Shown here piece by piece: positions 6,567 to 62,339 of a DNA stretch of 64,000 nucleotides; position 1 is the first letter of the stretch, and every line of letters starts with the position of its first letter. The notes below the pieces were generated by a model that was not told the origin of the DNA, ran no database searches, and worked only from the letters and a program-made list of their open reading frames with translations. This DNA comes from Takakia lepidozioides (lineage: Eukaryota; Plantae; Bryophyta): assembly GCA_030704615.1 (NCBI GenBank), contig CM060733.1:12834001-12898000 (forward strand), given 5' to 3'. Made by a program: the position numbers and the translations under genes.

Positions 6567-6624
<58 letters not shown>

Positions 6625-14634: not shown

Positions 14635-16910
14635 CTTAATTGAAGGCCCAGGAACTCTGTAGATATGCACAACATAAGCATCAGAAGGTACCTTTTCTGC
14701 TCCATATGCAACTTAACTCAACCTGTAATTTTCCCACTACAAGTACAAAAAACTTCCAATCTTCAATGAATATGATTCAAAGAGCACCAACAGCCATTAA
14801 CATCTATTGCAGAACCCTGACTATCACAACTGTGGTGGACTGTGGAAATTGGTTCTCATTCATGACGGTAGTGACAGTGAGGACCAAGGCCTTAAGACAA
14901 CGACAATGTTTTGACAATGCCAAACCAAATCCTGCCGCGTTTGTGGCAATCAGCAAGCAGTCTTCAGTCTGCATTACTATGATATATAAGTGAACAAGAA
15001 CTAAGCCAGATATCAATCGGTGAGTTAAGGGATAATGGGTCCAGCACTTTCTTTATCATCAGATCGCCAGTATTGAGGGGGCTTATTACGAACCAAAAAC
15101 GAGTCAGAGTCATCCAGGTCACCGTGTCTGCTCTGTCTGAGATGTAGTCTCTCAGATGGATAACGTCTCCATATTTGTTAGGACACTGGTCAATCAGAGT
15201 CTCTGAGCAAGCCCAAAGGCAGTTGGGGAAGGTCCCTTAGGGCCTAATACACCTGACCATTTGGCACTATGGCCTACTTTGTGGTTCGTCTGGATGATCG
15301 AATACATATAGCTTGCTATCTGAAACACTATGACTATCAACATATCAATAACCACATGACCCATAGATCAGACCCTTATTTCGTATCATCCGCCAAGCAC
15401 CCCAGTCACATCAGTCGTTGCTAATGAGAATCACAACCACATTCGACCCTAATAATTGTAGCCGTTAAACGTGTTACAAATCAGCGTTATAAACCCTTCA
15501 TCGTCAGCCACAGAGATGAGGAACTTTGTCTTCACGGATTTTCAAGTATGTCACTCCTACCCATACATCAGGAGGCATACACACTTCTCCAGGCCTCATA
15601 ATCATCTTCCATTAGCAGCACCTAAGAGAAAATTTAGCATGGCTCTGCAATCGCCACAACAAAAAATCTATTCTTCCGGCACATCAACCAAGACGCTGAA
15701 AAGCAAGTGAAACCCAAAACCCACCAGATAAGAATCTCAGTTCCTAGTCGTCTCCAACGGCTAAAGAGCCCGCGTGGTAACGAAAGCCAGACCTTCCGCT
15801 CCCTGGTTCACTTGGTGTCTCAGAAGCTTCAAAGGAGACAGGGTGCACACGGAACAATACGATTCGTGAAACTGAAAAGAGCGAAAGTATGTGAGCAAGA
15901 GCGCAGACTGATCCGCCATAGCCCGACGCACGCAGGCCACCTCGCGCGCTCTCTGCCGCCCTCCTTGCTGCGCTCTGTGTGTTGCTCTGCGCTCGCTCCC
16001 TTCCTCGCAGGGCCACACATTGCCCCACAGCGCCTGCCCGTGATTCCAAGGGCTCGCACCATCTGGCGATACCTACTCCCTCTGGCTATTCCTCCTTTCT
16101 TTGTTACTAATGCCAACCACCCTTGTCAATTTTGTCAGGACCGTTTTGCATTACTCAGTAGGCCCCGTTTTGCTTTAACCTCGTTGGTGGCGAAGGATGA
16201 TTTTTCTTTTTTCTTCTGGATTTGTTTTTGTTTTGTTGGCCCTGCCGGACTACGCAAAGGGTTTCAGCTGCTTTAGCACCGATACTTTCGATTAGACTTC
16301 CAATTCAATCGAGACAGTTGTCAAGAGTATATTCTGTTTTTTAATGAATGACATCCGTTCAACTGCCATAAATGAAAGTCCATCGGATATTACCTCGAGT
16401 GCCACCTGAGTGATTCAGGGCTCAAATCCTGTTACCTTGATATTTATTAATAGACTAATTATGTGATCTTCCAGATTTTTACTACCTATTCATAATTACT
16501 ATACGGCAGGCCTTGCATGAATTCCATGCATTTGTTTTGTTTGTTATTTTAAGGTGATTTGTTTTGTTTTCTTAAAGAAAGGGATAAAGCCCCTGAATTT
16601 TATTCTAGGAAAAAATAACTTTGGATTTGTAAGTTTTTCTAAATCATATTAGTAAAAGGCATGCCCTCAAGAAGTTGCGCTATGCCTGGGTGATATTTAT
16701 CCTATAATCTGATTCAACAAGTAATGCTGCATGCTACTCTTTCTGGCCTTGTTCACATCAGCACTCTAGATCTTTTGAACTTGACTGAAAATAAGCAAAT
16801 AAATAAAAGGAGTCATGGAAAAAAATAATCATGACATTAGGCAGCAGGAGTTGTTTTTTTTTTTTTTTTTTTTTTGGGGTATAAACAATTAGACAGTATT
16901 TTGTTTCTGA

Positions 16911-35926: not shown

Positions 35927-37990
35927 CTAGGAAGATAACCTTGATTGCTTGTACCGGAGCAGTCCATTTTGCAAGTGAAACTGCGATTTAACCCCCATCC
36001 TCAAGTCCCGCATCACGGACTTTGCCATCTCATCCTTCCAGTAAGCCTTCCGGATCTTCCTTTGGATCGTCGTCTCGCCCCTGTATACCAACATGAGCTG
36101 TTTTTTTCTACTTAAAGTATCGGCCACCACATTGTCCCGTCCCGATTTGTACTGGATATCCACGTCGAACACCGCCAAAGTGTCTTGTCACTTGAGTTGT
36201 TTTGGAGACAACTTAGGCTGCGTGGCAAAATACTTCACCGTGATATTGTCCATGAACACCTTCACCGGGTTGGAACCAACATAGTGGCGCCAAAGCTCAA
36301 GGCAATGTACCACCGCCTTCATCTCTTTCTCGTGCGTTGGCCACCGTCGCTCCACTTCATTCAGTTTCTTACTTTCGTAAGCCATTGGACATCCATTCTG
36401 AAGAGCACAAACCCAATTGCGAAGTCCGACGCATCTGTATGAATCTCAAATGGATGGTCGAACTCCGGGATTTTCAAGATTGGAGCTTCTGTCATCCGCT
36501 GCTTCAACTCGGCAAAAGCTTGGCCACAAAAGGTGTTCCATACCCATACCTTGGACTTACACAGAAGGTCTGACAGCGGCCCCGCAATCTTGGCAAAATT
36601 TCTCACATACTTTCGGTAATAGGAGGCGAGTCCTAGGAAGGATCGCACTCCCAGGACCGAAGTCGGAGGCTCTCAATCCAAGATTGCCCTCACATTTCTG
36701 TCATCCATTTTGATCCCATCCTATGTAATCACATGCCCTAGGAACTCCACTTTTGTGACCCCGAATTCGCACTTTGAAGCTTTGGCATACAGCTTCCCTT
36801 CCCGCAATTTCTGGAACACCCTTTTGAGGTGCTCCAGGTGGTCTTCCTTTGTTTTCGAGTAAACCAAGATATCGTCGATGTACACGATCACAAAGTCATC
36901 CAACCACTCCTGGAAAAGGCTGTTCATTAGCGTGTTAAAGGTCGCAGGTGCGTTGGTGAGCTCAAAAGGCATCACCAAGAACTCATATGACCCATACCTT
37001 GTCTCGCACGCGGTCTTCTCCTCATCTCCTTCCGCCACTTGGATTTGATGGTAGCCGGAGGGCAAATTGATCCGGCTGAAATACTTCGCTCCTGCCAACC
37101 GAACGAAGAGGTCGTCGATCCTTGGCAAATGGTACCGGTTTTTTATAGTCACCTTATTCATAGCCCTGTAATCGACACACATCCGCAACGTCCCATCCTT
37201 CTTGTCTGCGAATAGCACCGGGGCTCCGTAGGGTGACTTACTCGGCCGGATGTACTGCTTTGACATTAGATCCTTGAGCTGAGCCTTCAGCTCGACCAAC
37301 TCTCTGTGGCTTAACCGGTAGGGCGCCTTGGCAGGCGGCTCCAATCCCGGTATCACCTCAATCTTGTGGTCAACTCCTCTTCGCGGTGGCAAACCGCTTG
37401 GTAAATCCTCCAGCATCACATCCTGGTATTTCTCCAAGATCCCCTTGATCCAATCGGGGCTCGGCTCCCTATCGACTTCTCCCTCCATTTGTCTCACGTA
37501 AAGCAAAAATTGGGGCTCGTGTGGCTTCTCCACGGCCCACTCCCTTGCTCACAGCAAGTTTATTCGCCCTCCCACGGGGTTGGGCGTTTCCGACACTCGT
37601 AAAACTTCACCACCATTCCCACACGGTAGCGTGACTATTCTCTTGCGGCCATCTATGACCGCTCCGGATTTGCTCAAAAAGATCATCCCCAAAAATGAGA
37701 TCCACTCCATCGATCTCGCAATTGGTGAAGTTCTCACGTCCCTCCCAACTCCCAAGCTGAAGAGGAACATCGAACGTCAACCTCGTCGCCAATTGTGGTT
37801 CTCCTTTGGCATAAGACACTTCAATAGAGGCCCCCACATCACTTGTCGGGAGCCCCAGCTTCCGTGCCGTTGCCGGTGTCATGAAGGAGTGCGACGCTAA
37901 TGTGTTCACCAACAACAACACGTTAGTTCCGGAAATTATCCCACTCACGAACATTAACTGACTCCCTTTTCGCAAGCGCCAGTTTCCTGA
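35927..37990 (-). mobile_element. Ty3/gypsy (chromovirus-like) pol remnant: protease, RT, RNase H, start of integrase region; frameshifted and truncated at both ends
   Basis: LLVNTLASHSF (protease), [80 protein letters not shown]. Confidence 0.95.
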
Positions 37991-37995
37991 CCGGG

Positions 37996-40900
37996 GTGAA
38001 ACATCGGAGAGACTGTCATGTATGTTGTCAAAAGTGTCATGTGTGTGGTAAACCCCGTAAAGATGTGTTGGCCTTTGAATACCGACCTTTGGGAGGTCTT
38101 CTAGCTAGCATGTGCAGAAGCCGTACATTATGCCACCATTTTCTAACTTTGTGGAGGAATAGGGATAAATGGATAGGGTTGCCCAAGGACCACAAACCAC
38201 ATAACATCAAGGAATTTTGGGATGGTGCTAAACTACGAGAATTGCAAGCATTTTGGGATCCACAGTCTGAATGGGAAGCCCTGTTATGTGCCCAAATCAA
38301 GCATGTCGACGTTGTTTCACAGCCTTTCCTTCCAAGTGCTCAAAATTAAGACTGAATTGGAATGTGCAACTTGAGCTATATTTGTTTTTGTGTCTTGAGT
38401 GCTCAACTCTTGTGGAGGCACCCAAGCAATTCAAGAAGGCAAGTAATATATTCCTCAACTTTTTCCTCATTCATGTATTGTTGATAAATTTTTACCATGT
38501 CTTCTTGTCTGGAATGGTGTTCTTCTTCTTCTACTTAGGACTGCCTTTAGGATGGCAATGAGGAGATAAACATGTGGAGAAAAATTGATTTTGGAAAATG
38601 GAACGAAGCTGGAGAGACCTTCAGACCAGTGATGGCATCATTGGTAGAGAGAAAGTGAGATGATGAATCTGGAGCAATTGCATGTTCATACAAGGGGATT
38701 GATACAGGTCATGTTGTTATCTTTGTACTAAGATAGATGTCCACAAAGGGATTGTTGTATTCGGGCCTACAAATTTGTCACAACAGAATTAGGGTTCTGG
38801 CTACATGGAGGGGGGGGAACTGTATAGTTTCTCTAAGGACAATATTCTAAAGTTTTATTCCAAAACTGATGCCCTAATTGATGATGAGGTGGTATCTTCT
38901 ATTGACAGGGAGATCCAAGACATTTTGCAATCCTAGGCCACTGGGATGGGTTCCAAAGTGCACGGACCCGGCAAAGGGATTGTTGGACACTGGAGGTGGT
39001 TGTTTTAAATGCTGGAAAGGTCTCTCCTATAGGTCCCATTCCCATCTTGTTCATTCCTGCTAGCTCCGACAAAATCATTAAACAGGCAGAGACAAGTATT
39101 CTCTCCGCGTTTGTGGAACCTTTTGTACAAGAATTAGAAGATGCCTTTATCAAGGGCATCAAGGTTACATATGCCTATCCAAGTCAGCTGATTAGTGAGC
39201 ATCTTCCTCTTCACCCTCTTGATGAGCCTATCATGTTACATGCCATCCCGATGAATTTTACAGGAGACCACCCAGCATAGTGTAAAATTGGAGGGCTAAA
39301 AGACGGTGGTTACTCGGGGTGTCGGCGACACAAGATTTTCCTCGAGTTGCAAATGCACCACCTATATGGGTTCGATTTATCTCTAGATCTCGTTTATGAT
39401 GTGATGCATACATTGGCATTGTGTGTACTCAAAAAATATGTTGGGTTGTTGGTTGACACGATGGAAAAACTTGGGCGGATGAAGGAGCTGGAGGAGGGTT
39501 TAGCAATTGCTTCAGCTCCAAGAAGAAGACCTAAAGGATTAGGTGGACGGTGGCCTCGGAAATTGTCATCCTTGGGATACTACAAAGTTGAAGAATACCA
39601 GCTTTTTGTGATGTGGTGTTTACCATGTATACTTGAGCATTTAGATTTGGGGAAGAATATTGTCTTGGGTGGTGTTGGCGTAGTACTTACAGAAATATGT
39701 CGACACTTTTATTCCCACTCTCGAAAGTATGGATGGACAGAGGAAGCAATGCAAGTTGCTCGTATGTTGCTTTCAGCGTGGCGTGTGAGATTAGAGGAGA
39801 GTATCGAATCCAATGCCTCGCCACTTGAGCATGTAGCAGGTGAATGGCTAATGACATGAGTACCCTACAAATTAGGAGATGGATAGTGTTGTGCCATAAA
39901 AGATGTCTTTGTTGTGAAAGAATATTGATATGGAGATTGTGGTAATAGATGGAGATGTATTATACAGGGGCTGGTGAGCTATTAGATGACGTCGTACCAT
40001 GCAAATTAGGAGATCTGCAGTCAAATGTTGTGCCATGAAATACATCTCAAGGTTTGTTGTGAGAAAATATTGACCGACAGTCAAACAATTTGAGAAGCAT
40101 GTTATTCAGGTGACAAGAATGTGACTACAGCTTACATTTGAGGATATGAAAGTTGTAGTAATGGAGATCTGTTTTACAGGGGCTGGAGAGCTGTATGATG
40201 ACGTCATCCGGCATGGCTGCCATGACATATATTGGTGTTATGCCTTTGAAAGGCAAGTCTCTAACTACATGGCGGTCCCAACCAACCAAAATCTGAATGA
40301 AGTATCCTACATGCAGTTCTTTGAAGGTCAATTTTTCACAATGACCTTTTCATATATTCAGTTGGATGATGATGGTATGTTGGCGCATGGTCGAGCTTTG
40401 AAAGAGCTTCATGAGTTTCTTCAGCCCCCCAGCAATGTCTATCGACCTGCGATCAGGGATCCCTCACAATGTGACGAGTGGCATAGTGGTTGTGTCATCG
40501 TTACACCTTCACAAGTTCTGGCAAGACACATGTCGAAAAAGGTACATGTATTGGAACCTTGCTGGTGCAGGAGCATGATAGAAGAGAAAGGTATTTTTGT
40601 GGGTCCAAAGACTCCAGTCTTAAAAAACGTGGGTCCTAGCACGAGCTTGTATCTGGAACAGTTTTGGAGAAACCGGTTGGCAATGACAGATGCAAACAGA
40701 CATCTTTTCAGCAAAGAAATATCGGAGGTGAGATTTTTGTTGAGAGAAGGCACATAATATCGAAAAGGTGATTTTGTGGTCGTAAAATCAGATACTGAAA
40801 ACCAAAACCATGCATGGATGTGGAAAGCCAAAATCTTAGGGTTTTTTCTTCATGAGTTTGACGGGTACATATGCGGCTTCTTTGAGGCAATTTACTTCGA

Positions 40901-41528
40901 ACAAAGAGTTGCTACGAATGACTCAACCTTGTCGTTGGTGCATGAGACAAGCGGTATGTGCATCCTGAATGTGCACCCCACTGAGACATGTGTGAGGCCA
41001 GTGAATCAATTGATGCATAAGTTCATGGCTTTGCCCTTGCGCTCGAGAACACGATCAAGTCATCTTCATTCAGGCCAATTCATCGTTGCGTATGAACTTG
41101 AAGATGTAAGGCCCAGAGTGCATTTGTTGGAGGATGGACAACCCGGGTGTTGCCCACCATTTCCGGAAGTGGGTGATGTGATGCTTGTGAAAGAGGAAAA
41201 TGGCACAGAGCAAGGTGCAAACATTTACGTTGTTGTACGCTGTGTCACTCCACCTAATCCTCGCGTGGAAAGAGATGTAATTGAGTTGGGTAGGGCCGTG
41301 GAAGAGGATGACCACTCCATTGGTACTATCCAAATGAGTGTACTGCATCCATTTAAGCCTCGTTCCAACCTATTTTATGCTTCTGCTGCTACAAACGTGG
41401 GTGTCGTGGCACAAACTCTTGAAGGTCATGCCAAACTTCCATGCAACAAAGTTCCTTGCTGGTACGCCTATAGAGTGGAGGAGATGCTAGTGCAATTAAC
41501 AAGGGGCTTCAGGTACTGTATTCTATGA
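37996..41528 (+). pseudogene. CACTA/En-Spm-superfamily (Tnp2-like) transposase, spliced and decayed
   Basis: KEFWDG, GHWDGFQ, FTGDHPA, YDVMHTLAL, EEYQLFVMWCLP, YWCYAFER motifs in order. Stops, frameshifts and introns are present; the 5' end is lost at the gypsy junction. Confidence 0.75.
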
Positions 41529-45135: not shown

Positions 45136-46898
45136 AGATAAATACATAGTTGCATTACAAAGCAGACTTACAAAGCCTAATGTATTTTTGGAACGCAAAC
45201 CAAAAGATATGCGTACGAATGCATTCAGCGGTCATTTGTGGCAACAAATACTTGATGCAATTCATTTCAGGTCCCTACGGAGCTGCTACATATTGTACAT
45301 CATATCTCACAAAAGTCGATAGTACCATTACAAAGGAATTACAAAAAAATCTTGCAATACTGAAGCAAATTATGCTCATCCAAGTTAAATTTATGTCAAT
45401 CATAATTGTTCAAATTCTCTATCTAATTGAGTGACCTATAGGTGCAGCCTCTTGCCTTAATAGCTTTATGATTCTTATACAATTACAGACTACATTGTTT
45501 TGGTACATATCTTGAGATATTTGTTTAAGCCTTTGGTGAGGAGTATAATCTGTTCATTGTCACTAGAAGAAGATGAGCCTCACTTAGCTCAAGATAGCTC
45601 AAGATTATTCTAGCTAGTTAACTATAATACAAATAATTTAACTTTAAATAACTAAAAAAATCATAGTTATCCATGATTAAGCACATGACAAGTGATTTCA
45701 ACTGCATTGCCATAGATGCACCTAATGTACCATGAAAACCTTAATACTTAACCAGACGCAACCTAACAACAAAATGAGTGGGGATCCACTTCTTATTGGT
45801 GAAGTTGTAGATTTACAGATGCAAATGTGTAAATTTTACCCATATTTATGCACTCGAATGATGAAAGTTCATGGAATTCTTGACATATCTATCAATTATC
45901 TAAATAATCATCGTACAATTAAGTTGCATACCTTTCGAACAAATGTATACATTCATGAAATCCCACAATATATATAATGAAGTCATACACAAAGTCGGAT
46001 GTCTAGTAGATGGGTTATCTACATAAGATAACCAACAAACTAGTTACAATTCATACATTATTTGGGATCAATAATAGATCAAATCAGCCTACGGCAATTC
46101 TGATTCATGTAAGAAAATCACCTACATTAATAGATCTGCTAATTCAAACATTATTCATACAAGCGGTTGAGCTTTTGCAAAAGTACTATAGAAGGCAACC
46201 TTCACCTTACTGATTGCAGTGGATGGGTAGTATGTTCATCTTTTGATCTCTTCCTTCAAGCATGTTGGATTAATCCAATCTTGATCTAATCTTCAATCTC
46301 AACCTGCTTCTTCGGCACCAAACATGGAATCTTTTTTTTCTCAACAAGTTTGGGATCACATGGGTCGGATGGAGCAGGGTTAAGGAGACGTCTACTTGGA
46401 AAAAATACAAGACTGTGGCGCAGGTTTATTGACCAAATCCATACTTGAAGCATCAATAGTCACAGACTCAACATCCTTAAGTGCAACGCAATGCACCACC
46501 ACCACTGCCAAAAGCAGCACACAAAACTTGCGTGCAACTTTCCCATTTCAGATCTTCTCACTCTTGTGACTTGACGAATCTCAAAACCTTCTCTCTCTCC
46601 TTTTATCCCTATGTAAAGGAGGTGCTAAAGATGATAATTAGGACATGATAACTATCCATATTTATATTGCGCCGCGTATACACAAAAACATGAAAATATC
46701 AAGGATGATGCTATCAATTAGTCACACTTAAAGATGCTACTTTTGACCAACTAATATTAGAGAATCTGTTTTGCGTTCAAAGATGATTCCAAAGTCCTAA
46801 ATATTGAACTATTTTCATGATTTTGTCAGGTCTGTGAGTCACAATCAAGTTGGTTCGTTCCCAAATTAAATGTATATTTGACTAGTAATATGTCAATA
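45136..46898 (+). repeat. Left arm of large inverted repeat (Helitron-derived segment carrying peptide gene copy)
   Basis: Reverse complement of 49101-50912. Begins with a Helitron Rep fragment (YIVALQSRLTKPNVFLERKPKDMRTNAF..GPYGAATYCTSYLTK) and ends near a hairpin plus CTAG|T at 46882-46886. Confidence 0.92.
46286..46546 (-). pseudogene. Frameshifted copy of the secreted peptide gene
   Basis: Same 261-nt span as 49443-49703, but a -1 indel after codon 7 gives TGA after 28 codons; a +1 indel follows later at ~46405. Confidence 0.8.
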
Positions 46899-47334
46899 AT
46901 GTAGTAGTAATATATAGTTTTGAAGCACACCACCCTCAAAAGGAGTCAGTAGCCAAAAGATAAAATGACGTTTAGTTACATCAGCTTTCGCCGGCATTTT
47001 TTTTGGGTTTTTTAATTGAAAACTTTCTTCGATGATTTTTAGGATGTTGATGTGGGCCAAGAAATTTGTGTATGCAATTGGAATATTTAACTCTATGATT
47101 GATTTTCACGTCGACGTCTACAATGTAGTGTGTCACAAATGTTGCAGCCAAAAGTTCACAAACACATTCTACGGGGAAAAAACTAACTTATTCTCATGTT
47201 TGTGGGTTGAACATGTGTCAAGTACTAAATATTTTTGCACTAATATTCAACTCGATGAAAATAACAATGTATAAATATCACACCAAAAATCATGTGTCCT
47301 TTTGCATGTATCAGCTTTATGTACCAAAAGACAA

Positions 47335-47549
47335 ATAAAGACACAATATTCCAGAAAAAACCAAATTTGTGGTGTTCATAAATTTCCAATGACAAAATAT
47401 ACTTGTAATTCAAAATCTCCTACACTGCAGGTTCAAAAATTATGAAACCGCCTTAATGCACCCCTACTCATTGAGGGATTTCCAACGGTATCAAGATTCC
47501 GGGCGGAAGCCTTACGGTTTGGGGGATCTCAACGACAAAACAAACAAAC
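47335..47549 (+). repeat. Inner inverted repeat, left copy (~215 bp)
   Basis: Reverse complement of 48888-49103 (e.g. AATTATGAAACCGCCTTAATGCACCCCTAC), visibly more diverged than the outer arms. Confidence 0.85.
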
Positions 47550-47562
47550 ATCAGCTTCGAAA

Positions 47563-48865
47563 CCAGTCACATAGTGGCAAGTTGGCCACTTTCAATGTTC
47601 ATTTGTTGAGGATTAGAGATGTGAGTGATGGGATAACTATAAAATATAGGGTGCGTAGAAGGGGTGTGGTGTATTTAAGAGACAATTGGAGGTTTTCTTT
47701 TAGGAAGTGGATATTATGATTATGCATATTTCCCCTGACACCTGCAATGATAATAGTGAGGGGACCGCATTCCATCCATGTTGGGGCGAAGGGCAAGTAT
47801 GAGCAGTTCATATTTTTCACGTGTATACCTAATCGATTGGTCTGGATATCTATCATGGTAGAATGTGATTTCTATAATATGAATTATGAAGGATGAAAGT
47901 GGGCATATGAGTTCAGCCACCGAGATTGAAAGCCAATGAATTAGTAAGATCTCCAGGCAGAGCCTTAGTAGTCAACAACAAGCATAATGGAGGCATATAC
48001 ATGGCAAAAGCTAGGGTGTATAGTGTGGTCTAGTGTTCATCTTTGGAACGCGCCTAAATTTATGTTGTTAACTATGAGGTTAACCCTTAAACGCACGCAT
48101 TCCTTGTTTTTAAACCCAAAAAAAGGGACCCGCTTCCCAAAAAAAACCCCGTAGTTTACTCATCGAAAAAAAATGACAGAAGATTCTGACGCCATATACC
48201 TACTGCATAGTCTGTCAAAATTAGAGACCAATTAGTGAAGCTCTCGCACTTTCCCACCGTTGGGTTTGAGGCCCGATTTTTGGCCAGGTCTAAAAAGAAA
48301 ATGATATATATATGGGCCTTTTGGAAATTTGGATGATGGGTTGGAATCGGATGAGGCTGTGGTAGGGAGGGTTTTATTTACATGACATCTTGCATCCAAC
48401 GAAGCAAGAATCATGCCAAATGGCCAAAATTTATGCTCATGATGGTAGCTCAAAAATAGGGGGGTCAAAATCGCAGATGTGAGCTCCACTACTTGGAGGG
48501 CAGTGTAATTTCCAGCAAAACGTGTAATACAAATCTGTTTCACTCTCATCTTTGCATCCCCACCCATTTGTGCCTCCAACCATCTTTGCATGGGTGGGAT
48601 TTGAACCCATAAAACTGCCCCTTTGGCAGCCCACACATGAATACATGGAGGGAGACTCCCCCCCCATGTGTGTACCCCCACTTGGAGAGGGGATACTTGC
48701 TATCATGATATTGCCAGCTGTAAATTTACATGCCAGGTGTTCACAAATTCTATACCATGGGTTGCAGCCAAAAAACCAAACGTAGAAATGACAAACAACT
48801 GCAAAATGCATTAGTGGTCATGACAACAAAGTACGTCATCTGTAGCTCCGATAGATATATAAAGA
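47563..48865 (-). mobile_element. Non-autonomous Helitron (~1.3 kb), copy 1
   Basis: On the minus strand: A|TCTTTATAT 5' end, AGTGGC-CAACTT-GCCACT hairpin, CTGG|T 3' end (A-T target). Homologous to 55317-56878. Confidence 0.7.
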
Positions 48866-48887
48866 TATTAGGCAAGGTAGTTTATTT

Positions 48888-49103
48888 TGTTTGGTTTTGT
48901 TTTGTCGTTGAGATCCCCCAAACCACAAGGCTTTCGCCTAGAATATTGATACCGTTGGAAATCTCTCGATGGGTAGGGGTGCATTAAGGCGGTTTCATAA
49001 TTTTTGGACGTGTGGTATGGGAGATATTGAATTACGTATTTTGTCATTGGAAATTTATGAAAACAGCAAATTTGGTTTTTTTTCTGGAATATTGTGCCTT
49101 TAT
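48888..49103 (-). repeat. Inner inverted repeat, right copy
   Basis: Reverse complement of 47335-47549. Confidence 0.85.
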
Positions 49104-50017
49104 CGACATATTACTAGTCAAAATTTGGCAACGTACCAACTTGATTGTGACTCACAGACCTGACAAAATCATGAAAATAGTTTAATATTTAGGACTTTGG
49201 AATCATCTTTGAACGCAAAACAGATTCTCTAATATTAGTTGGTCAAAAGTAGCATCTTTAAGTGTGACTAATTGATAGCATCATCCTTGATATTTTCATA
49301 TTTTTGTGTATACGCGGCGCAATATAAATATGGATAGTTATCATGTCCTAATTATCATCTTTAGCACCTCCTTTACATAGGGATAAAAGGAGAGAGAGAA
49401 GGTTTTGAGATTCGTCAAGTCACAAGAGTGAGAAGATCTGAAATGGGAAAGTTGCACGCAAGTTTGTGGGTGCTGCTTTTGGCAGTGGTGGTGGTGCATT
49501 GCGTTGCACTTAAGGATGTTGAGTCTGTGACTATTGATGCTTCAAGTATGGATTTGGTCAATAAACCTGCGCCACAGTCTTATGGATTTCCAAGTAGACG
49601 TCTCCTTAACCCTGCTCCATCCGACCCATGTGATCCCAAACTTGTTGAGAAAAAAAAGATTCCATGTTTGGTGCCGAAGAAGCAGGTTGAGATTGAAGAT
49701 TAGATCAAGATTGGATTAATCCAGCATGCTTGAAGGAAGAGATCAAAAGATGAACATACTACCCATCCACTGCAATCATTAAGGTGAAGGTTGCCTTGAA
49801 TTGGATACTATAGTACTTTTGCAAAAGCTCAACCGCTTGTATGAATAATGTTTGAATTAGCAGATCTATTAATGTACGTGATTTTCTTACGTGAATCAGA
49901 ATTGCCGTAGGCTGATTTGATCTATTATTGATCCCAAATAATGTATGAAATTGTAACTAGTTTGTTGGTTATCTTATGTAGATAACCCATCTACTAGACA
50001 TCCGACTTTGTGTATGA

Positions 50018-50051
<34 letters not shown>

Positions 50052-50912
50052 GGGATTTCATGAATGTATACATTTGTTCGAAAGGTATGCAACTTAATTA
50101 TACGATGATTATTTAGATAATTGATAGATATGTCAAGAATTCCATGAACTGTCATCATTCGAGTGCATAAATATGGGTAAAATGTACACATTTGCATCTG
50201 TAAATCTACAACTTCACCAATAAGAAGTGGATCCCCACTCATGTTGTTGTTAGGTTGCGTCTGGTTAAGTTTTAAGGTTTTCATGGTACATTAGGTGCAT
50301 CTATGGCAATGCAGTTGAAATCACTTGTCATGTGCTTAATCATGGATAACTATGATTTTTTTAGTTATTTAAAGTTAAATTATTTGTATTATAGTTAACT
50401 AGCTAGAATAATCTTGAGCTATTTTTTTGCTAAGTGAGGCTCATCTTCTTCTAGTGACAATGAACAGATTATATTCCTCACCAAAGGCTTAAACAAATAT
50501 CTCAAGATATGTACCAAAACAATGTAGTTTGTAATTGTATAAAAATCATGAAGTTAATAAGGCAAGAGGTTGCACCTCTAGGTCACTCAATTAGATGGAG
50601 ATGATGTATGGATGGAATTTATTGGAACTGAAAATTTTGATTGTGATTGATATAAATTTCACTTGGATGAACATAATTCGCTTCAGTATCGCAAGATTTT
50701 TTTGTAATTCCTTTGTAATGGTACTATCGGCTTTGTGTGATATGATATACAATATGTAGCACCTACATACAGGGATCTAAAATGAGTTGTATTTGTTGCC
50801 ACAAAAGACCGGCAAAATTGCCAAATGCATTAGTACACATGTCTTTTGGTTTGCTTTCCGAAAATACATTAGTCTTCGTAAATTTGTTTTTTAATGCAAC
50901 TATATAGTTATC
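49101..50912 (-). repeat. Right arm of large inverted repeat
   Basis: Reverse complement of 45136-46898; has an expanded (TA)n at ~50020-50048. Confidence 0.92.
49443..49703 (+). CDS. Small secreted peptide precursor (86 aa; signal peptide, RRLL site, 2-Cys C-terminal peptide)
   Basis: MGKLHASLWVLLLAVVVVHCVA signal-like N-terminus; SRRLL|NPAPSDPCDPKLVEKKKIPCLVPKKQVEIED; TATAAATA at ~49323; single exon. Confidence 0.7.
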   Translation: MGKLHASLWVLLLAVVVVHCVALKDVESVTIDASSMDLVNKPAPQSYGFPSRRLLNPAPSDPCDPKLVEKKKIPCLVPKKQVEIED

Positions 50913-51290
50913 TTTCTCTACTTGTAATAGTGACAGATAATTTTTGAATGAAATATCTTTCCCAAGACCCATTTTGTGTAATCCGTCAAAAATTTGTGAT
51001 ACAACATTTTGTAGTTCGTTTGTGTTATCACTTAGTTCTAGTATCGGAGTTAAAATTCTCGTTCGTTTCATTGGAGGCAACGGAAAATGAAATCGACATA
51101 TAGGCTTGTTGTGTTTTCGATAGTATGTCTTTGATGATAAAGCTGCACTTCGCAAATGTCTTAATTTGGAAGCAGTTCGCTATTGCAAATAGCAATTTAT
51201 CGATGAATGATTCTATTTCAAAGTCTTGTGCTACTCCAAATGAAATCCATAATGGTCCGTGAGTGCATTCAAAATCCATAATATTTCGTG
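50690..51290 (-). pseudogene. Helitron Rep (HUH endonuclease) fragment
   Basis: THGPLWI (HUH-like), SKTYYRKHNKPICRFHFPLPPMKRTRILTP, NAF..LLWQ..IQLILDP, A.YC.SY..K motif region; frameshifted. Confidence 0.8.
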
Positions 51291-52772
51291 ATTGTACGCC
51301 TTTCTGCGAGCCCGTGTCCCCTTAGGAAGAAAAGTAACACAATTGGGTCCAAGAGAGAGAGAGAGAAGAGTCCGGTCAGAGTTGGCATAACTAAGAGCAG
51401 CCACTCCACCTTACGGCTACTGTCCCCTTTCAGGGGTGGGCGAATTGGGTCCAATACTATCGATGGCTCACTCTTGTAGCGTTGAAGTGGATTATGGACA
51501 ATTTTTGGATATAGAACTATATAAATCTAGAAGTGTTAGTTCTACATTTAACATGGTCTGTTTGGGGAGCGGGAATTCGGACCATGGGATCTTTGTATGA
51601 GTACACGATGCTGATGGCGACAACGACTGCAGTGTTTGGCTGAATGGGCGATGAGCATCATGTACTGGCTATGGTGGAAACCTTACGAGAGTCGTAAGAA
51701 GAGAAGCCTTGAATGACACAGTAGGGGAGAGCAAATTGTGCTTAGATCCTACGCGTAGATAATGATATACTAATTCACTTCTACGTCCCAATAACTTTAT
51801 TCTAGACAGACAAATATCCATTCATGAGCTTGGGTCAACAACGCGCATTGCGCTCATGGACCTAGAGCTAGTAAGACAAGTGTTGATAATCGAGAATTCG
51901 TGCTACCAAACGTTTAATTATCCCAATGACATTTAGCAATCTATGGAAGGGAATGTTGTTGTCCTCACGAATGGTTGGTTTTGGAAGAAGCAGCGCAGAA
52001 TCCTGGACCCAGTTTTTATGTGAATCTTTCAGTTGGTTATCTATGTGACATGTCTACTCATTCCCTCTCTCTTCCTCTCCCACGCACCAGAAAAGGAAAT
52101 ACGTAGACTCCACGGAAGTGCAACACTTGTACGGCGATGCGACATGCTGCCCGCATCTCCTTCACGTGACTCTATTGCCACCCTGCCACTTGAGCACTGA
52201 ATCCTTCCGTTCATACACTCCCTCTGACTCAACTAGATTTGGCACCCAACCATCGTTCAAATCCTTGGAATAATTTGGGCAATCATGTTGGCATTCCAAA
52301 CCGAAAGTAATTTACACTAGGATGTTGATTGTATATGTTGAGGTTCCATTGAGAGAGCTTTCCTTCTCAACAGACATCGGCAACAGATCTGGGCTTGGAT
52401 AGGCTCTCAGAAGGAACTGCATGAAGATATATGATGCCCCTCCAATAGTTTGTCACAGTAGTATTCTACTGACATTAAACTGAGTAACTAGTGCCTTAAC
52501 GCTTAAATTGCCACATGGCCCATTTTGTGCTTCCACAATGATGTAAATCGGTGTGGAGATCACAGATGTCACTCAAACCTGGATATAAAAAATATACGGA
52601 GATGGGCTTCATGCGTAGGTCTCAGATCTGGAAGGAAATGCCATAATTTGAAAAGTAAGATGGGTAATCTCACTTTGAGTGAGAAGAGGTCACTGTCGGC
52701 CAGGTCCTATATTGTGTACTTATTTTCCTGCACTTTTCATTTGGCTCCTATGACTTTGCACACTTTCTTCAG

Positions 52773-52907
52773 CCAACCAATTTTCGGTTTATTTAGCGGA
52801 GACAAGCTGTTGAGGTGTTGGGCTAAGTCGAGCGGAGAGAAGAAGACAATCCATAGGGTTTCTCTGAGGAGGTGAATGACGTGCTGAGAGTTACTGTCTG
52901 GTCAGAC
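52773..52907 (+). pseudogene. Remnant of piggyBac accessory ORF (homolog of 58528-58995)
   Basis: PTNFRFI*RRQAVEVLG*VERREEDNP*GFSEEVNDVLRVTVWSD aligns without gaps to PVDFCFAFRRHVSLILGWKERRDEGNKEGFSEAVNAVLREDVWPD (24/45 identical). Confidence 0.85.
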
Positions 52908-53329
52908 TTTGGATCGCATTCTACCTGCAACCACGATAAGGCTGAGAGTTCTAGCGAGACAACTAGATAAGAATTTCATAACACCTGCATTTAATTCTAT
53001 TGAGGGGAACGATGAAGAACCTCCTAGAACTATGTCATTGTAGTGGATCTGAAAGAGCCGGTATAGATATTGCTGATCATGGTCAAAATGAAGAGGCTCT
53101 GGGTCCTCTGGGCCAAACTGTCAAGGTAAAAGTGGTTGATATGCACTTGGACATTGTAGGGGCATGTGAACTATTTTTTGTATCCTTTTCGGTGGAATTG
53201 GTGTTCACATTGTATCTTCCTTTCTCTATACTTTGCTCGATTTGGATTCTCAATTTCGTTGCTCGGTTGAAGAGATGATGGGGGTTGCTGCATCTATGGA
53301 TGATATGCCCAACTTTGATCATGATAGAG

Positions 53330-54993
53330 TTCGATGATGATGATTACGATCCAGGTAAAGAGGTCAATGCAGAGGGTGGTCATGATGTTGATCCCGACCT
53401 CTGAGATTTCTTTGACGACATTCGGAATACTAGTCGACAGCTGGGATTATATGATTTGCCTACTGGATGGGAGAATTGGGATGCTCATGACCTCTTTGCT
53501 GATGATATGTGGAACTCTAATGCAAAGACTATCCCTAAGATAATGTGGATTGGAGCAGACTTTGGTTACGATATGGAATTTGGTGATGATGCTTTACTTT
53601 ATGATTTTTTTGCTTTGTATTGGCTTTTTCTCCTTATGCGAAAGGTGGTTATGATGACCAACCTTTATGCCCAAACTGAACTCAAAAGGGAGATTAAGGG
53701 GGGGTCGTTCCTAGTATGTTGTCAATGTGGAAGAATTGAGGGCTTGGTTAGCAGTCCACATTTTGATGGGTATAAAAAAGGTATCCAACACCCACATTTA
53801 TTGGAAGGTCAACCATGAATTCTTCACATGTGCTTTTATTATCCGCATCATGAGTAGAAAGATGCGGGAGATAATTCTCAGATACCTCCATCTTGTTGAC
53901 AATATGACAATGGAAGTGGATACAACTAGATTTGCCTATGATAAGTTGGCTAAAACCCATTGTTTGTGGACGTTCAAAATTCATTAAATGTACGCAAAGT
54001 ACTGCAACCTTGAACAAAACCTAACTATAGACGAGATGATGGTAAAGTACAAGGGGAAATATGCTAAGATCCAATAGTACCTAGCTAAAAAAACCTGTAA
54101 AGTGGGGCAATCAAATTTAGTGCTTGGCATGTGCTACTTCAAAGTATGTGATGAGGATGAAGGGGGTTTTAGGCAGGGAAGTCACATTGGATCTGTGGCA
54201 CATGATATTAGTTATGAATATATTACTTAAAAGTCTATGAGGGGAAGATTCACATTATTATCATGGGTATTTTTTTTCCCAGCCCTTCGTTGTTCTTTGA
54301 CTCAGAAGCCAAAGGGATATATGCAATAGGTGTCATGGGTCCTGTGAAACCTGTGCGAATTGGCTTTCCTAGTTATTTGGACTATGGGGCTCGTGGAGAG
54401 AGGGGCAGACTAGATTACCGCATGCACATATCTAAGAAGTTAACAGCAGTTGTTTGGTTTGACAGAAAACTTGTTCACCTATTGAGTACTTCTTTCAGTT
54501 CTGTTGCTGATGACCATTTCACTATCAGGTGACACAATGGTGCCAACAGGTCTGTCCCTGTTTCCCATATTGTAAACACTACCTGCAACAATATAGGAGA
54601 GGTGTTGATGTGCAGGATCGACTAAGGGGGTACTACAGTGTGCAGACACGTGATCATAAGTGGTGTCACCGTCTTTATTTCTACTCTATAGATACGTCTT
54701 TGGTAAATCCATATTTTTTGTATGGGGCTTTCATGAGATCCCAAGAGAAAAGGCCACCGTCGCACATGCAAATGTTCAATATTGAGGTAGCGAATGGACT
54801 AACACGTGGTTGGGTTGGTCCTAGGAAAACAGTACAGGCAACAAATCCCAATGCTCTTCACTACTCCCTCAAGAGCAGTAGGAGACACAAGTGTGTTGAA
54901 TGTGGACAGAGGCAAAGGTATTTTTGTGCGTCTTGTAGGGATGTCCCAATATGCTCAGGGCGTTGTTTTTTGAAACATCACAGTGCACCTTGA
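53330..54993 (+). pseudogene. piggyBac (PGBD4-like, DDE_Tnp_1_7) transposase, frameshifted
   Basis: DFFALYW..TNLYA, EELRAWLAVHILMGI, LRYLHLVDN, YDKLAK, TIDEMMVKYKG, VVWFDRKLVHLLST, RGVDVQD, KWCHRLYFY and C-terminal Cys-rich CVECG..FCASC..ICSGRCFLKHH. Confidence 0.9.
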
Positions 54994-55316
54994 ATAATGT
55001 GAGTGGTAATTTCTAATGTGAATGTGTTGTTTGTGTAATGCAGAGACTTGGGGACTGAGCAGCAGGCAAGGGTATCTCCACTGAAGTTCTCATATAGGGT
55101 TGTTGTAGTCTGTCTTTTGTTGAATACACTAACATATTTGGGGATCACTGGTAATTTCATGCTGCCACTAACACTCAAAAGGTTGTACTAGTTGAGAGTT
55201 GTTTGGACCATGATAGGACCATGATACTAGATCAACTAGTCTAGATAGTCATTTGGATAGGAATTATGTCAACTGTTACTTGATTGGTTTAGGGATCATC
55301 TAAATTGTTGTTGTCA

Positions 55317-56878
55317 TCTACCATAGTTGCATGCAGAGAGAGCTATAGATGACAAATATACTTTGTTGTCACGGCCATTAATCCATTTTGCTGGTGCATG
55401 TCATTTGTACGTTTGGTTTTTTTGCTGCAGCAGTCCCTGCTGTCATTTGTTAACACCTCTCATTCCAATTTGAGATTGGCAATATCATAACAGCAGGTAT
55501 CCCTGCTCTTTGATGTGAAATTCTATACATGTTATGTTGCAATAGACAACTCCGTGCTGGTGGCATCTCTAGATTTACTTCGTTCGAAAAATTACTTGAA
55601 CTTACAATGGAAGACTCAATGTAGCAGACGGATGTTTTGTTTAGGGTACTCCATTCTTAGTGGTTAGAGCAATGTTGAGATCGTTGGTGTTTACTTTAGG
55701 ATAAGTATTAGTCCCCTTTCCAAGCGGGGCTGCACACATGGGGGGAGAGTCTCCCTCCATGTGTTCATGTGTGGGTTGCCAAAGGGGCAGTTTTATGGGT
55801 TCAAATGCAAAGTTGATTGCAGGCACTTATGGGCAGGGATGCAAAGATGAGAGTGAAACAGATCTGTCTTATACATTTTGCTGGAAATTACACCCCCCAT
55901 GTAGTGGGGCTCACATCTGTGATTTTGACCCCATATCTTTGAGCTGCCAACATGAGCATAATTCTTGGCCATTGGCATGATTTTTGCTTTGTTAGATTCA
56001 TACTGTCATATAGTGAAACCCTCCCTACTACGGCCCCATCTTATTCCAATCCGTCATCCAAATTTCCATATATATATATACCTGGCCATATACATATACC
56101 TCACCAAAAATTAGGCCTCAAACTCAATGGTGACAAATTGTGTAGCAGATATATGGCGTTAGAATATTTGGTCAGTTTTTTTGAGAAAAAAAAATACTAA
56201 TGAGCAAATTACGGGGTTTTTTCGGGAAGGGGGTCATTTTTTTCTAGGTTGATAAAAAAGGGAATGCGTGCGTTTAAGGGTTACCCTCATAGTTAACCTC
56301 ATAAATGTGGGCACATTCCTAGGATGACCACTAGACCACACTATACACCCTAGTTTCTACCACGCATATTCCTCCATTATCCTTGTTGATGTCTGGTAAG
56401 GCTATGCTTGGATATCTTACTAATTCATGGGCTTCCAATCTCGGCGGCTCAACCCATATGCCCAATCTCATCCTTCACAAATCATATTATAGAATTCACT
56501 TTCTACCATGATAGATTTCCAGACCACTCGATTAGGTATAAATGTGAAAAATACGAACAGCTCATAGTTGCCCTTCACCAACATGGATGGAATACGGCCC
56601 TTCACTATTTTACTACAAGTGTTATGGGAGGTATGCAAAATCATAATATCCACATCCTAAAAGAAAACCCCAAGTGTCTCTAAATACACCACATCCCCTC
56701 TGACCATTTACTTTATAGTTATCCCATCACTCGCATCCCTAATCCTCAACAAATGCAAGATTGAAAGTGGCCAACTTGCCACTGACTATTTACTTTATAG
56801 TTATCCCATCACTCACATCCCTAATCCTCAACAAATGCAAGATTGAAAGTGGCCAACTTGCCACTTATACGTGAGTGG
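55317..56878 (+). mobile_element. Non-autonomous Helitron, copy 2, nested in piggyBac B
   Basis: Homologous to the reverse complement of 47563-48865. A|TCTACC 5' end, same terminal hairpin, extra ~205-bp insert at ~55505-55710. Confidence 0.7.
56701..56864 (+). repeat. 82-bp tandem duplication of the Helitron 3' hairpin region
   Basis: TGACCATTTACTTTATAG...GTGGCCAACTTGCCAC at 56701 and 56783. Confidence 0.92.
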
Positions 56879-58120
56879 TTCCCATGTTGATATGGCCCAC
56901 CTATTTCTTAAAAAATTGTCATTTTTAGAACATTGTACATGTGCCATGCCACCACCAATTGGCTACATTCAATTCTCACATGTCACAATCTCTACAATTG
57001 CATAAAGACCTTACCTGATTTTTGTTTTGTATTTATTGTACCAATGAAAAACATAAATCTCGGCGGGACCTTACGTTGCGTGGAATGCCCTGGTAAACGG
57101 CACTATGCTTGGTCAGCGGGCATTACAAGCGGTATAAAAATCTAGGGGCTTTTTCCCTTTGTATTTGCAGGGACATTATCTGACGAAATATCATGTCAAC
57201 AGCTGGCAGGGACCTTATGTGTAAGATCCCGAGATCTTATGCCCTGTCATATTTTCTTTTCTATATTCGTTTATTTTATTTTACTTTTAGGGATATGAGA
57301 TCTGAGCCATCCACCCAGATCTTCAAGAGACAAGTGGCAGATTAGGCTGGCATTCTTTCCTAGATTTTCGGGCCTCCCCCTCGGCCACGTACAGGCTACC
57401 GCCTTGGGGGCTCGAAGCCCCGAAATCAGGAAGGGACCTTCACTTATACAGATTTGTATATCCTCAAAATTACAATGATTTACCATATCCAAGAAACCTC
57501 TGCTTTCTAGAGGCAATTAAGGGTTAATGCCCTTGGAAGCACCTAACTTCTTGGGCTATTAACCCCTAAACGACGAGCCGACCCGAATCGGGTCGGCCCG
57601 ATTTTTCATCCATTCGTAGCATGCACGGATGAAGTCCGATGAACAAGCGGCTTGAACAAAAAATGTAGCGCAGAACGAGTTGCACACGCAGGTCTTTATG
57701 GCGCCCCCAACAGAGAAAAACTCCGCTGTCAGGAATTTTTTGAAGTTTGGAAATTGCAGGATTTTGGGTGGAGGGGCACAGCAGTTGACCGTCGACGTGG
57801 CAGGTGGCAACGGCCACGCGGGTGGGATTTTGCGGCGGGGGGGGGGGGGCAAGCAGGGGTGATGAGGCACGAGTGCACGACACCCGCCATGATGGCACCG
57901 CCCGGCCCTTTGTGCACCCCCCGCCCGGCCCTGTCTTTCGCGCGCGTTTTGGCAACTCGACCTTCTTCTTCACAGCTCCCCGCCACCTCCATCTTGCATG
58001 CATTTTGTGGCTTGTGTTTGTGTGCGACAACATTTTGCGTTGGCACAAGGCCTTGTTGATTTCTGGCTGCTTGGGTACCCAACCCACAATTGCTGAGGTT
58101 TAGAGGCGGGTGGCGCGTCT

Positions 58121-58423
58121 GCGCATTCATGAATTCGCAGGCTGGGGGGAGCATTCTGTAGGCTCTATCATTGAAGCTAAGTCCCTTAGCTTGTTGCTTG
58201 TCTGTGTTCTCTGATATGCTTTGCCGCCTCTGTTGAATGTCCTTCAGTGCGTTCGTTTAGGGCGCTGATGCGCATTCATGAATTCGTAGGCTGGGGGGGG
58301 GGGGCAGTGCGCAGGCTCTCTCATTTATGCTAAGTGCCCTTAGCTTGTTGCTTCTTTGTGTCTTGGGATATGGCTGCCGCCTATGTTGAATGAGCTTTAG
58401 TGCATTCGTTTAGGGTGCTGCAT
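58121..58423 (+). repeat. ~150-bp tandem duplication in the 5' region of piggyBac A
   Basis: GCGCATTCATGAATTCG(C/T)AGGCTGGGGG...TTCGTTTAGGG(C/T)GCTG at 58121 and 58270. Confidence 0.85.
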
Positions 58424-58527
58424 CGCTTTATGCCTTGGCGGCCGTTGGTGTCATTTCTGCATTCTGTGTCTCCTCATTTGCATTGCTCGTACTTAGGGGG
58501 GTTTATAGGGTCTGGGCGCAAGATGCT

Positions 58528-58995
58528 ATGGGTCACAAGTGTAAGGTGTGTAATGCCTTGGAGCCACCAACACCTCCGCTGCACTATAAGAGGGTTGTTG
58601 AGGTGGTCACTCAGTGGGCGTTGATTGAGCAGCATTGTACTGAGGGGCAATTGAGGGACATTTTGGGTTTGTTGTGTGAGGAGTACTTGCTTTCTTTGCC
58701 TCAACCTTCGCGCGCGCAGCGGTGGCCGAAGCATCCTCGTCCTGTGGATTTTTGCTTTGCATTTAGAAGGCATGTTAGTTTGATTTTGGGGTGGAAAGAG
58801 AGAAGGGATGAAGGTAACAAAGAGGGCTTTAGTGAGGCTGTGAATGCTGTGCTTAGAGAGGATGTCTGGCCAGATGAGGACAGTCGAACAAATGAGGGAT
58901 GCAGCGCGCCAGAAGCGGGAAAGGCCTGCGGGCAAGGAGAATTCGCCTCCTCATCGACCACATGTGAGGAGAAGAATTGTGAGAAGAAGGAGTGA
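58528..58995 (+). CDS. Intact 155-aa accessory ORF of piggyBac A (CxxC N-terminus; unknown function)
   Basis: ATG 58528 to TGA 58995, ending 13 nt before the transposase ATG (59009). A homolog sits at the same position in piggyBac B. Confidence 0.75.
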   Translation: MGHKCKVCNALEPPTPPLHYKRVVEVVTQWALIEQHCTEGQLRDILGLLCEEYLLSLPQPSRAQRWPKHPRPVDFCFAFRRHVSLILGWKERRDEGNKEGFSEAVNAVLREDVWPDEDSRTNEGCSAPEAGKACGQGEFASSSTTCEEKNCEKKE

Positions 58996-59008
58996 TACGG
59001 GGTGCACA

Positions 59009-60888
59009 ATGGGCGGTAGCGCACAAATGCAATTCACCGCGGGTGACTGTGCGCCTCCCGCTAACTCCTACAGGTCTCCTCTTCGTGCGTTGTCTTTCAA
59101 TTTGCAGGGCTCTTCCCATGCGGGGCCCAATTTGGATGCTAGTGGTTTAGACTTGTTGGATTGTGGAAATGGGGATGTGGAGATGGGGCTTATGGAGGGA
59201 TATAAGGGCGATTCATGTGAGGAAATGGACTGGGAGAGTGATGGGCCTGCCGAGGAGGTTGACGAGGTGAGTGAAGAGGCTTTTGCAGCTTTGTTCGCTC
59301 CTGCAAGTTGGGAGTGCCGAGAAACTGCCTTTTGCAGTGATAGAGAAAAATTCACTAGTCCCCCACTTGGACCCATGCTGCGGCGGATTTTTGGGAATTG
59401 TTCCCTGTGGAATTGTTTTTCAAGTTGTTCTGGTCCCAAGCAACCTTGCTGCGAATTTGTCGAGAGACCAATCGTTACGCGGCGGAGAGGGTGACGTCTG
59501 GAACTCGAGGTGGTGCTTCTTGGAGGCCATTGGTTGTGCCAGAGCTACTTGCCCGGCTTGGTGTGTGTTTGTTCATGGGGATAAAGAGGCTGCCAAACAT
59601 CCGCTGCTACTGGCCGCTGCTACTGGCAGCAGATTGAGGTATTCTTTGCATGCCCTGTCATCATGAAGGTCATGACAAGAGATCGTTATGAAGTAATCTT
59701 ACGTTGCTTGCATTTGGTGGATAACTCGACGTTGGTGTCTGATCGTAGCAGTCCTGCATTTGACAAAATTGGGAAAGTGAGATTGGCATGTAAAGACATT
59801 GCCAGTGCCTGCAAACGGCATTGGAACCTGCACAAATTGTTGATAGTTGAAGAGATTATGATAAGGTGCAAGGGTAAGTATTGTGCTATACGACAATATA
59901 TGCCTTAAAAGCCATGCAAGTGGGGCATCAAAGTGTGGGCCCTTGCAGACGCAGTCAGTAGCTATGTGTATGATTTTGATGTCTACTGTGGCAAGAATGG
60001 GGGCCCCCTGGGCATCAGGAAGAAGTCTGGCAAAGGTGAAGGATATGATGTGGTTTGGAGGCTAGTGTCTCCATTGCATGGACTTGGCCATGTGGTGATG
60101 ACTGACAATTACTTCACATCACCAAGGTTGTTGTATGACTGTCAGGGTCAATAGAAAGGGATTGCCTCCTTCCTTGACATGCTTGTCCAAGTTCAAGACT
60201 GCCAAACAAGGGGACACATGGTGGCGTATGCACCGCAACCGACAAGTTGTTGCTTGTTTGTGGTGGGATAAGAAAGACATGTTCATGGTGTCATCCGCAT
60301 CTCGGCCAACATCTGGTCCGAATTCACCTGCGACGGTGCGAAGGTTTGTGGGGAATGCCAGGGTGCAGGTGCCTTCTGTTCCAATGCATGTTCAATACAC
60401 AAACTTACATGCGTGGTGTAGATGTACAAGACCAGATGCGAGCTAAATATAGCATGCAGTTGAAGACTCATAAATGGTGGCATAGAGTGTTTTTTTTCCT
60501 TGTGGACACCACGATTGTGAATTCTTACATCTTGCATGTCTATCACATGCGAGCGAGGGGGTCGCGTCCCCTGACCCATCTGGAGTTCTCGTTGGCCTTG
60601 GCACACGCTCTTACAGCTCCTGGCAGGCTGCCTGTGCGTCCGGTTCGTGCATCCGTGTTAGCGACAGAGCCTGCCTACTGGCATTCCACTTTGCACAGCT
60701 CGCTTCCAATATGTCTTGCTCGTTGGTGATTGGCCTCGGGTCCTGAAGCACACCGCGTATGTTGTCGAGAGCGTCGTGTGTGCATCCGCTATGGGTTGCG
60801 TACCCACTACTTCTGTCCCCAATGCGAGGATGCATTCATGTGTCTTGGCAATTGTTGGCGTGAGGCACGTCAACTCCGGGGTCGATGA
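59009..60888 (+). pseudogene. piggyBac (PGBD4-like) transposase, frameshifted
   Basis: LFFKLFW..ETNRYA, FMGIKRLP..YW, MTRDRYEVILRCLHLVDN, FDKIGKVR, IVEEIMI (first catalytic D reads E), KWGIKVW, VMTDNYFTS, WWDKK, MRGVDVQDQ, KWWHRVFFFLVD, CIRYG..FCPQC..MCLGNC. Several frameshifts and a premature TGA at 60727. Confidence 0.93.
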
Positions 60889-62339
60889 ACATGTGGGTGT
60901 GTGTGTGTGTGTAGGTGGGAACCGCATCTGCAGGTGTTTGATGATGCTATGCTGGCCTCAGGACATGGCGGATATAGTGTGTGGGTGTGTGTGTGTGTGG
61001 GGGGGAACTGTCTGCATATGTGGGCATATCAGGGGGTTCGACTCCCCCTAAGTCGGGCTTATCCCATGTCTGCTGAGTTCACCATGTCTGGTGGTAGTTG
61101 ACAAGTCCACAAAGAAGGAACCTGATAGTTAGAGTCGGGTGCTTGTGAGGCCCTCCCCAAAATGCCGAGGAACGTCGGGACGGCTCGAATGAGTTGGCCC
61201 TGGCAAATGATGGAAATCCCCAACGTGGCCCGAAAAACGTCGTCGGATTCAAGCGAAATTCCGGCCACCGATTGCTTGACCTGGAGGAGGCCGGAAATTT
61301 CACAAAATCCCACATCCCAAATGCAATTTAGAGTATTTTTGGGAAATTCTTGGGCAGGCTTGTGTAATTCTTGGCCTATGAGGGACTGACCGTTGGAATT
61401 CCCAATTGAAGGAGAATTTGGGGTCCCAATGGGGCTTATACCATTTCCTTTGCAAATTCTCTTTTTGGACCCCCATTCCAGTCACATACAAAGCACCCTC
61501 CCCCTTCCTTTTGGCAGATTGGGGTGAAATTTGGTGTGCTGGTTTGGGGTTGTGCACTTCACAGGAATATAGCTATTTTTCTCCCAGGAAAATTTGGGAT
61601 CATGGATATTTGCTTGGTCAAACATGAACTTTTGCTTTGTTTTTTCCATTTTCCAAAAAATGCACCATCTTCAAATGTTATAATCTCCCAAACTACACGG
61701 TGGAATCTCCCCAAATTTGGAGGACTTGTGCATCTGATAGGTAGAAAGCAGTTTGTACGGTTCATTTACGTGGATGAACGTTAGTGGGCAGGTAGCCGCT
61801 GACGTGTGAGGCTGGGTCCCAGAATTGTCCAAAAACCCAAAAACACCTCTCGTCTTTTAGGGGTTAAACAAGCCGCAAACCGCGAGGGTCTCTAGGCCCA
61901 CGCAAATGCACCTTTGCTCACTCCCGTTCGCCCGGTGAATTTGCCAACGGGAGGCCCCACGTCAGCGAAGGGCTGCACCAGGCACATGAGGCGAACGGTT
62001 GGTGGCCCCATCGCGTTTTTTCTTTTGGAGTTGGTTTTTACCAAAGCTCGGTGCTTGCCCTTACATGACAGGTGCGAGCCATTGCACGTTGATGTGCTTG
62101 CAATTACATGCTCAGGCTTATTTATCAAAACCAAGACTACAAAAATGGACGGAGCTCTCATGGGAAAGGTCTTCCTCATTTGGATGCTTCTTTATGTTAC
62201 CTTAGGAAACTGTGCAATGTTCAAGTCCGGAGTGAGGCATTTGTTTGCAGATAATGAACCGCCAATAGGGTTTAGCTTCCTTCCAATTTTGTGTGTCATT
62301 GCAAAGAGGAAGAAAAAGAACCTAGACAATACACGCATT

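Follow-up and report, generated by a model that had tools for sequence, protein, structure and literature searches.

The 64,000-nucleotide stretch of Takakia lepidozioides analysed here (contig CM060733.1, positions 12,834,001 to 12,898,000; hereafter the window) carries two neighbouring, decayed piggyBac transposons, elements A and B. We propose, with a probability of about 0.6, that both are dead copies of a bryophyte-type plant lineage of two-gene piggyBacs, in which a small accessory gene, open reading frame 1 (ORF1), would encode a host-facing transposition helper. In window coordinates, the elements comprise the following features, including terminal inverted repeats (TIRs):

57563-61863, plus strand: element A, a decayed piggyBac with TTAA at 57559-57562 and 61864-61867
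57563-57577, plus strand: left TIR of A, 15 bp
58112-58420, plus strand: tandem duplication in A, 5' of ORF1, 153 bp, 80% identity
58528-58995, plus strand: ORF1 of A, a KolX-like accessory gene of 155 amino acids; its start agrees with that of the closest relative, P0001 (residues 3-146 versus 3-143)
58561-58872, plus strand: conserved helical core of ORF1, about residues 11-115, with Cys in place of Arg76 in this copy
58862-60888, plus strand: transposase gene of A, with frameshifts near 59402, 59600, 60139 and 60399, a stop at 59906 and a C-terminal Cys-rich domain
58862-58995, plus strand: probable overlap in A of the ORF1 tail (frame 0) with the transposase N-terminus (+1 frame); candidate ATGs 58862, 58874 and 58892
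61849-61863, minus strand: right TIR of A, 15 bp, one mismatch
52500-57523, plus strand: element B, a decayed and older piggyBac with TTAA at 52496-52499 and 57524-57527
52770-52907, plus strand: ORF1 remnant of B, the core's C-terminal half, interrupted by three stops
53456-54993, plus strand: transposase of B, broken, with DDE pieces at 53700-54975 and a Cys-rich tail

The original prediction of two separate TTAA-bounded piggyBac elements holds, as flanks, TIRs and DDE_Tnp_1_7 pieces were all found. With their TTAA flanks, B and A are separated by 31 nt, and no stretch of DNA similarity between them exceeds 42 nt. As is typical of piggyBac, the TIRs begin with C's, clearly in A and in degenerate form in B, whose TIR is weaker (12-13 bp, one substitution and one extra base) and resembles the end of the public locus L004. 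Pieces of DDE_Tnp_1_7 score above the Pfam cut-off in both elements and are accompanied by a Cys-rich C-terminus, but both transposases are broken. The TTAA target-site duplication, present in A, B and the related locus L013, the C-rich TIR ends, the DDE_Tnp_1_7 core and the C-terminal Cys-rich domain are those of canonical piggyBac (Trichoplusia ni type). Canonical piggyBac is a single gene, whereas the plant elements have two overlapping genes.

The gapless match between 58741-58875 of A and 52773-52907 of B (24 of 45 amino acids identical, three stops in B) was reproduced, and tblastn gave it E 1.2e-8 within the window, where the next match had E 4.4. DNA identity in this block is 30/30/21 of 45 at the three codon positions, half of the identical residues are written with different codons, and the ratio of nonsynonymous to synonymous substitution rates (dN/dS) of the core between A and B is 0.26. 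The claim of a homologous ORF in both elements went too far: B lacks an ORF, and what can be recognised of the domain there is its C-terminal half (profile positions 63-116) but not its N-terminal half. The ORF of A, described as intact, is indeed open over 155 codons, but its residue 76 is Cys in place of the Arg found in 94% of relatives, so that intact need not mean functional.

A phmmer search of the 155-residue ORF1 against 1.84 billion representatives returned 169 matches, 39 of them at E 1e-10 or better, from organisms including Ceratodon and Klebsormidium. The relatives, mostly unspliced gene calls from assemblies, have a median length of 180 residues, exceed 350 in only 4 of 150 cases and never carry a piggyBac DDE domain on the same chain. 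Matches span ORF1 residues about 11-116 and the tails are variable; AlphaFold predicts a confident helical core in ORF1, with a predicted local distance difference test score above 90 over most of residues 11-115. Positions R76, L87, W89, R110 and P115 are near-invariant in the family (Arg110 in 89%), and its alignment contains no conserved cysteine, with no column reaching 30% Cys. Core dN/dS is 0.17 in the closest pair and 0.22-0.28 in other pairs, with synonymous sites near saturation in the distant ones. In every locus read, ORF1 ends at its own stop codon. The 169 relatives, purifying selection, the separate stop and the adjoining transposase bear out the view of ORF1 as a separately encoded, selected, element-borne protein, but do not demonstrate any one of the functions suggested for it (regulator, cofactor, anti-silencing factor). 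Neither a word-based homologue search nor a metagenome scan with ORF1 of A gave a match; profile searches recovered 8 and 4 family members, none of them named, a metagenome scan with a narrow alignment recovered two loci, and nothing usable came from atlas searches. Hemerythrin, SecE and HAD matches of the core were judged to be chance.

In every locus with enough DNA downstream, a transposase follows the accessory gene (L005, L009 and L011 end too soon to show the downstream gene). The predicted position upstream of DDE_Tnp_1_7 genes was found in the piggyBac-type loci, where this gene follows on the same strand: L001-L003 (one family), L004, L007 (a Ceratodon purpureus chromosome), L008, L010, L012, L013 and a contig with an intact natural pair, a 185-residue ORF followed by a 931-residue DDE_Tnp_1_7 ORF. 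Such contexts total ten with A and B included. L013 is complete, with TTAA flanks and with TIRs that resemble those of A. Other members are carried by Kolobok-type elements (PF20700), for which GG..CC ends with TTAA are the signature (PMC9587614): L014 is a complete 5.8-kb element (1688-7493, metagenome) with TTAA and GG..CC ends and the domain as its first gene, and L006 (Klebsormidium, 7771-15338) has a PF20700 transposase and a right end with the same terminal sequence as L014. The Kolobok-borne members form one well-supported branch, a sister clade, in a quick, unrooted tree with many open forks, from which the direction of transfer cannot be read. No ordinary host genes surround the accessory gene in any locus read, contrary to the scenario that its homologues are mainly host genes outside piggyBacs.

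Three side observations concern these loci. Plant piggyBac transposases at L013:3378-6653, L008:1234-2900 and L012:1403-4383 are greatly extended at the N-terminus, with a shared motif region that has no Pfam match; the intact proteins reach 900-1100 residues or more. The contig of P0008 (SRR18067594) has at 1130-4300 a 1056-residue ORF in the +1 frame that overlaps the accessory ORF by 41 nt and has no Pfam family on record. L006 carries a 390-bp inverted copy of its own 5' end.

Reading frames and codon patterns indicate that a two-gene, overlapping architecture is very probable. The original prediction left a gap of 13 nt between ORF1 and the transposase; the ATG at 59009 on which it was based is present, but the genes appear to overlap. 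In A, where the transposase frame is open from 58844, the N-terminal helix of the transposase starts at 58862-58892, inside ORF1, and is homologous to the helix of L008 and L009 (shuffle p 0.001). Because of fixed ATG positions, this shared helix and the dN/dS pattern after the core, the most likely start of the A transposase is 58862-58892, with 59009 as an internal codon. In L001, L008, L009 and L010 the +1-frame ATG that begins the helix lies 7 codons past the last conserved Pro; in A and L013 an ATG lies 3 codons before that Pro. This second ATG may be reached by leaky scanning or from a start site of its own. Directly 3' of the core, dN/dS between L008 and L009 is 0.09 in the transposase frame versus 9.8 in the ORF1 frame. 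Six of seven tabulated pairs have their transposase in the +1 frame relative to ORF1; L012 was called with a stop/start overlap, yet has an open +1 frame there too. ORF1 stops 2 to 150 codons past the core. In B a +1-frame helix was not demonstrable (p 0.26 or more). In a sequencing run guessed to be RNA, coverage is limited to 58031-60606, besides small 3' pieces, and a 2.1-kb contig (58183-60303), which as an assembly is not proof of one transcript, crosses both genes unspliced and lacks several lesions of the window.

The core is probably a zinc-less relative of the C-terminal half of Kolobok KolX and of the P2X7 ballast, which makes the comparison with KolX, first offered as an analogy, more than that: the same domain heads real Kolobok-type elements (L014 and L006) and resembles the KolX C-terminal half in its C-terminal motif and arginine pair. 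Like KolX of Kol0 Kolobok, it is the second protein of a TTAA-targeting DNA transposon. Unlike KolX, the plant domain lacks the zinc-binding half, has no significant sequence match to it and is mostly piggyBac-borne; the seven zinc-binding cysteines of the KolX/ballast family were not found in the plant family. Pfam, PDB sequence, profile and Foldseek searches gave no significant match of the core to the P2X7 C-terminus. When structures were ranked, P2X7 (6u9v) came second of 48,161, a weak match (root-mean-square deviation 3.1, 67 of 78 residues aligned), and the likeness to the P2X7 cytoplasmic ballast and Nanor is a weak structural one over 67 residues. By eye, in the published alignment, Arg76 and Arg110 correspond to R546 and R578 of the ballast, the only guanosine diphosphate ligands kept across all animal ballast domains.

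The novelty is partial. One sentence of an earlier paper already reports a few piggyBac families whose second protein is KolX-like, piggyBac-2_GrCh and piggyBac-14_PI (Kojima 2022, PMC9587614, Data S6), and these forms also lack the seven zinc-binding cysteines. Compared with them by eye, the plant family is larger, has an additional N-terminal helix and usually a six-residue insertion, lacks any conserved Cys and overlaps the transposase start. The suffixes of the two published names we take to denote a red alga and an oomycete. No description of the plant family or of the overlap was found in the open literature searched, a scope that leaves aside Repbase and most subscription journals.

How such a helper might work can be sketched as follows. 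Gene 1 would yield a small separate protein, in which a four-helix core of about 105 residues is followed by a tail that varies and is largely unstructured. Comparison of the loci shows that the transposase, gene 2, starts at its own +1-frame ATG where the core ends, the tail of gene 1 being written over the transposase N-terminus. The two conserved arginines may form a phosphate-binding site for a nucleotide or nucleic acid, and the tail may serve to dock host factors, among them, in some lineages, Ku of the end-joining pathway. That the accessory domain accompanies two transposase superfamilies suggests a helper not tied to one transposase fold, and hence one that faces the host; the specific mechanism, with its arginine phosphate site and docking of host factors or Ku, is tentative.

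The Ku part comes from a motif, [RK]x[LI]PxW, present in the tails of 7 of 147 relatives (P0006, P0012, P0028, P0040, P0056, P0151 and P0152) in three parts of the tree, against a mean of 0.055 and a maximum of 2 in shuffles. All seven tails match, in a disordered region, the minimal Ku-binding motif R-X-X-P-X-W known along with the Ku-binding motifs of APLF/MRI/WRN (PMC4831024). Across the motif block in L008 (1422-1445) and L009 (463-486), changes are silent in the ORF1 frame and not in the transposase frame. That a piggyBac-type transposase can work with Ku is known from the domesticated PiggyMac, which needs Ku to cut in Paramecium (PMC4148214); in the plant elements, by contrast, the putative Ku contact would come from a separate element-encoded adaptor. 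Weighing against this part, the motif is rare, short and absent from ORF1 of A. The motif peptides had no PDB match. With considerable doubt, we rank a repair adaptor first, followed by anti-silencing, fusion and a translational brake. A still broader proposal appears unlikely: a transferable module of piggyBac and Kolobok, from streptophyte algae to mosses and ancestral or sister to the P2X7 ballast, that binds a nucleotide or DNA end, recruits Ku, couples excision to end joining and is encoded over the transposase start.

Like VANC of VANDAL elements, the ORF1 protein could instead be an anti-silencing or chromatin factor, with an arginine-rich helix binding element DNA or RNA. A small, basic-surfaced helical protein in two unrelated transposon superfamilies does suggest a transposase-independent, host-facing job, but no known DNA- or chromatin-binding fold was found in the core and neither A nor B shows a conspicuous repeated target motif, which leaves this reading quite unlikely. 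It is improbable that splicing or +1 ribosomal frameshifting instead joins the core to the transposase as the N-terminal domain of one long protein, with the stand-alone ORF as a by-product or minor form. The +1 offset almost everywhere, a transposase frame that opens exactly at the core end and a Klebsormidium gene model (GAQ83852) joining the domain to a Kolobok-type transposase would fit such a fusion. A Met codon at a fixed +1-frame place would be needless in it, however; there is no common slippery sequence and too little intron room between core and helix, the presumed-RNA contig is unspliced there, and in L008/L009 the ORF1 frame is itself constrained further along the tail. Very improbable is a brake, whereby ORF1 mainly limits transposase output, intercepting ribosomes as an overlapping upstream ORF and inhibiting the transposase through its product. 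The overlap rules out simple re-initiation and most loci have several ATGs between the two starts, yet a brake would not account for a fold that is conserved, with near-invariant residues, from moss to alga, and ATG depletion between the starts is only mild, with some boundaries guessed, too little to establish leaky scanning. A captured host-gene fragment or chance similarity, which the death of both window copies and the half domain of B might suggest, is largely refuted by E 1e-8, the codon-position pattern, 169 relatives and the lack of host-gene context in the loci read.

The function of KolX is not known, and the P2X7 ballast is thought to be KolX-derived. A compact, zinc-free version, intact two-gene copies such as L013 and genetically tractable mosses open the question to a standard piggyBac excision assay, and a helper common to two unrelated TTAA-targeting superfamilies may be of interest for piggyBac vectors, plant ones in particular. 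This significance is tempered by the earlier one-sentence report (PMC9587614) and by a helper role read from sequence.

Family A is multi-copy, as many other flanks join at 57558-57559, its left end, in a DNA run. It also has abundant non-autonomous derivatives, indicated by depth at its ends roughly ten times the internal depth and by DNA contigs joining 57763-57871 to 61128-61180, leaving out about 3.3 kb. No tRNA or Rfam matches were found near A and B. Element B contains an 82-bp tandem duplication (56697-56860, 96%). Upstream of B, a fold-back structure at 45136-50913, for which no target duplication was resolved, has 1.8-kb arms at 92% and inner 220-bp arms (47335-47550 and 48888-49103); the core of the structure (47550-48848) resembles, in inverted orientation and at about 79%, the 3' part of B (55340-56891). 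Further transposon-like ORFs, recognised by eye from translations, are a long coiled-coil-type ORF (40-2607), a Mutator/SWIM-like transposase (5135-8001, minus strand), a Gypsy-type reverse transcriptase (36721-37533, minus strand) and a transposase-like region (39347-41528).
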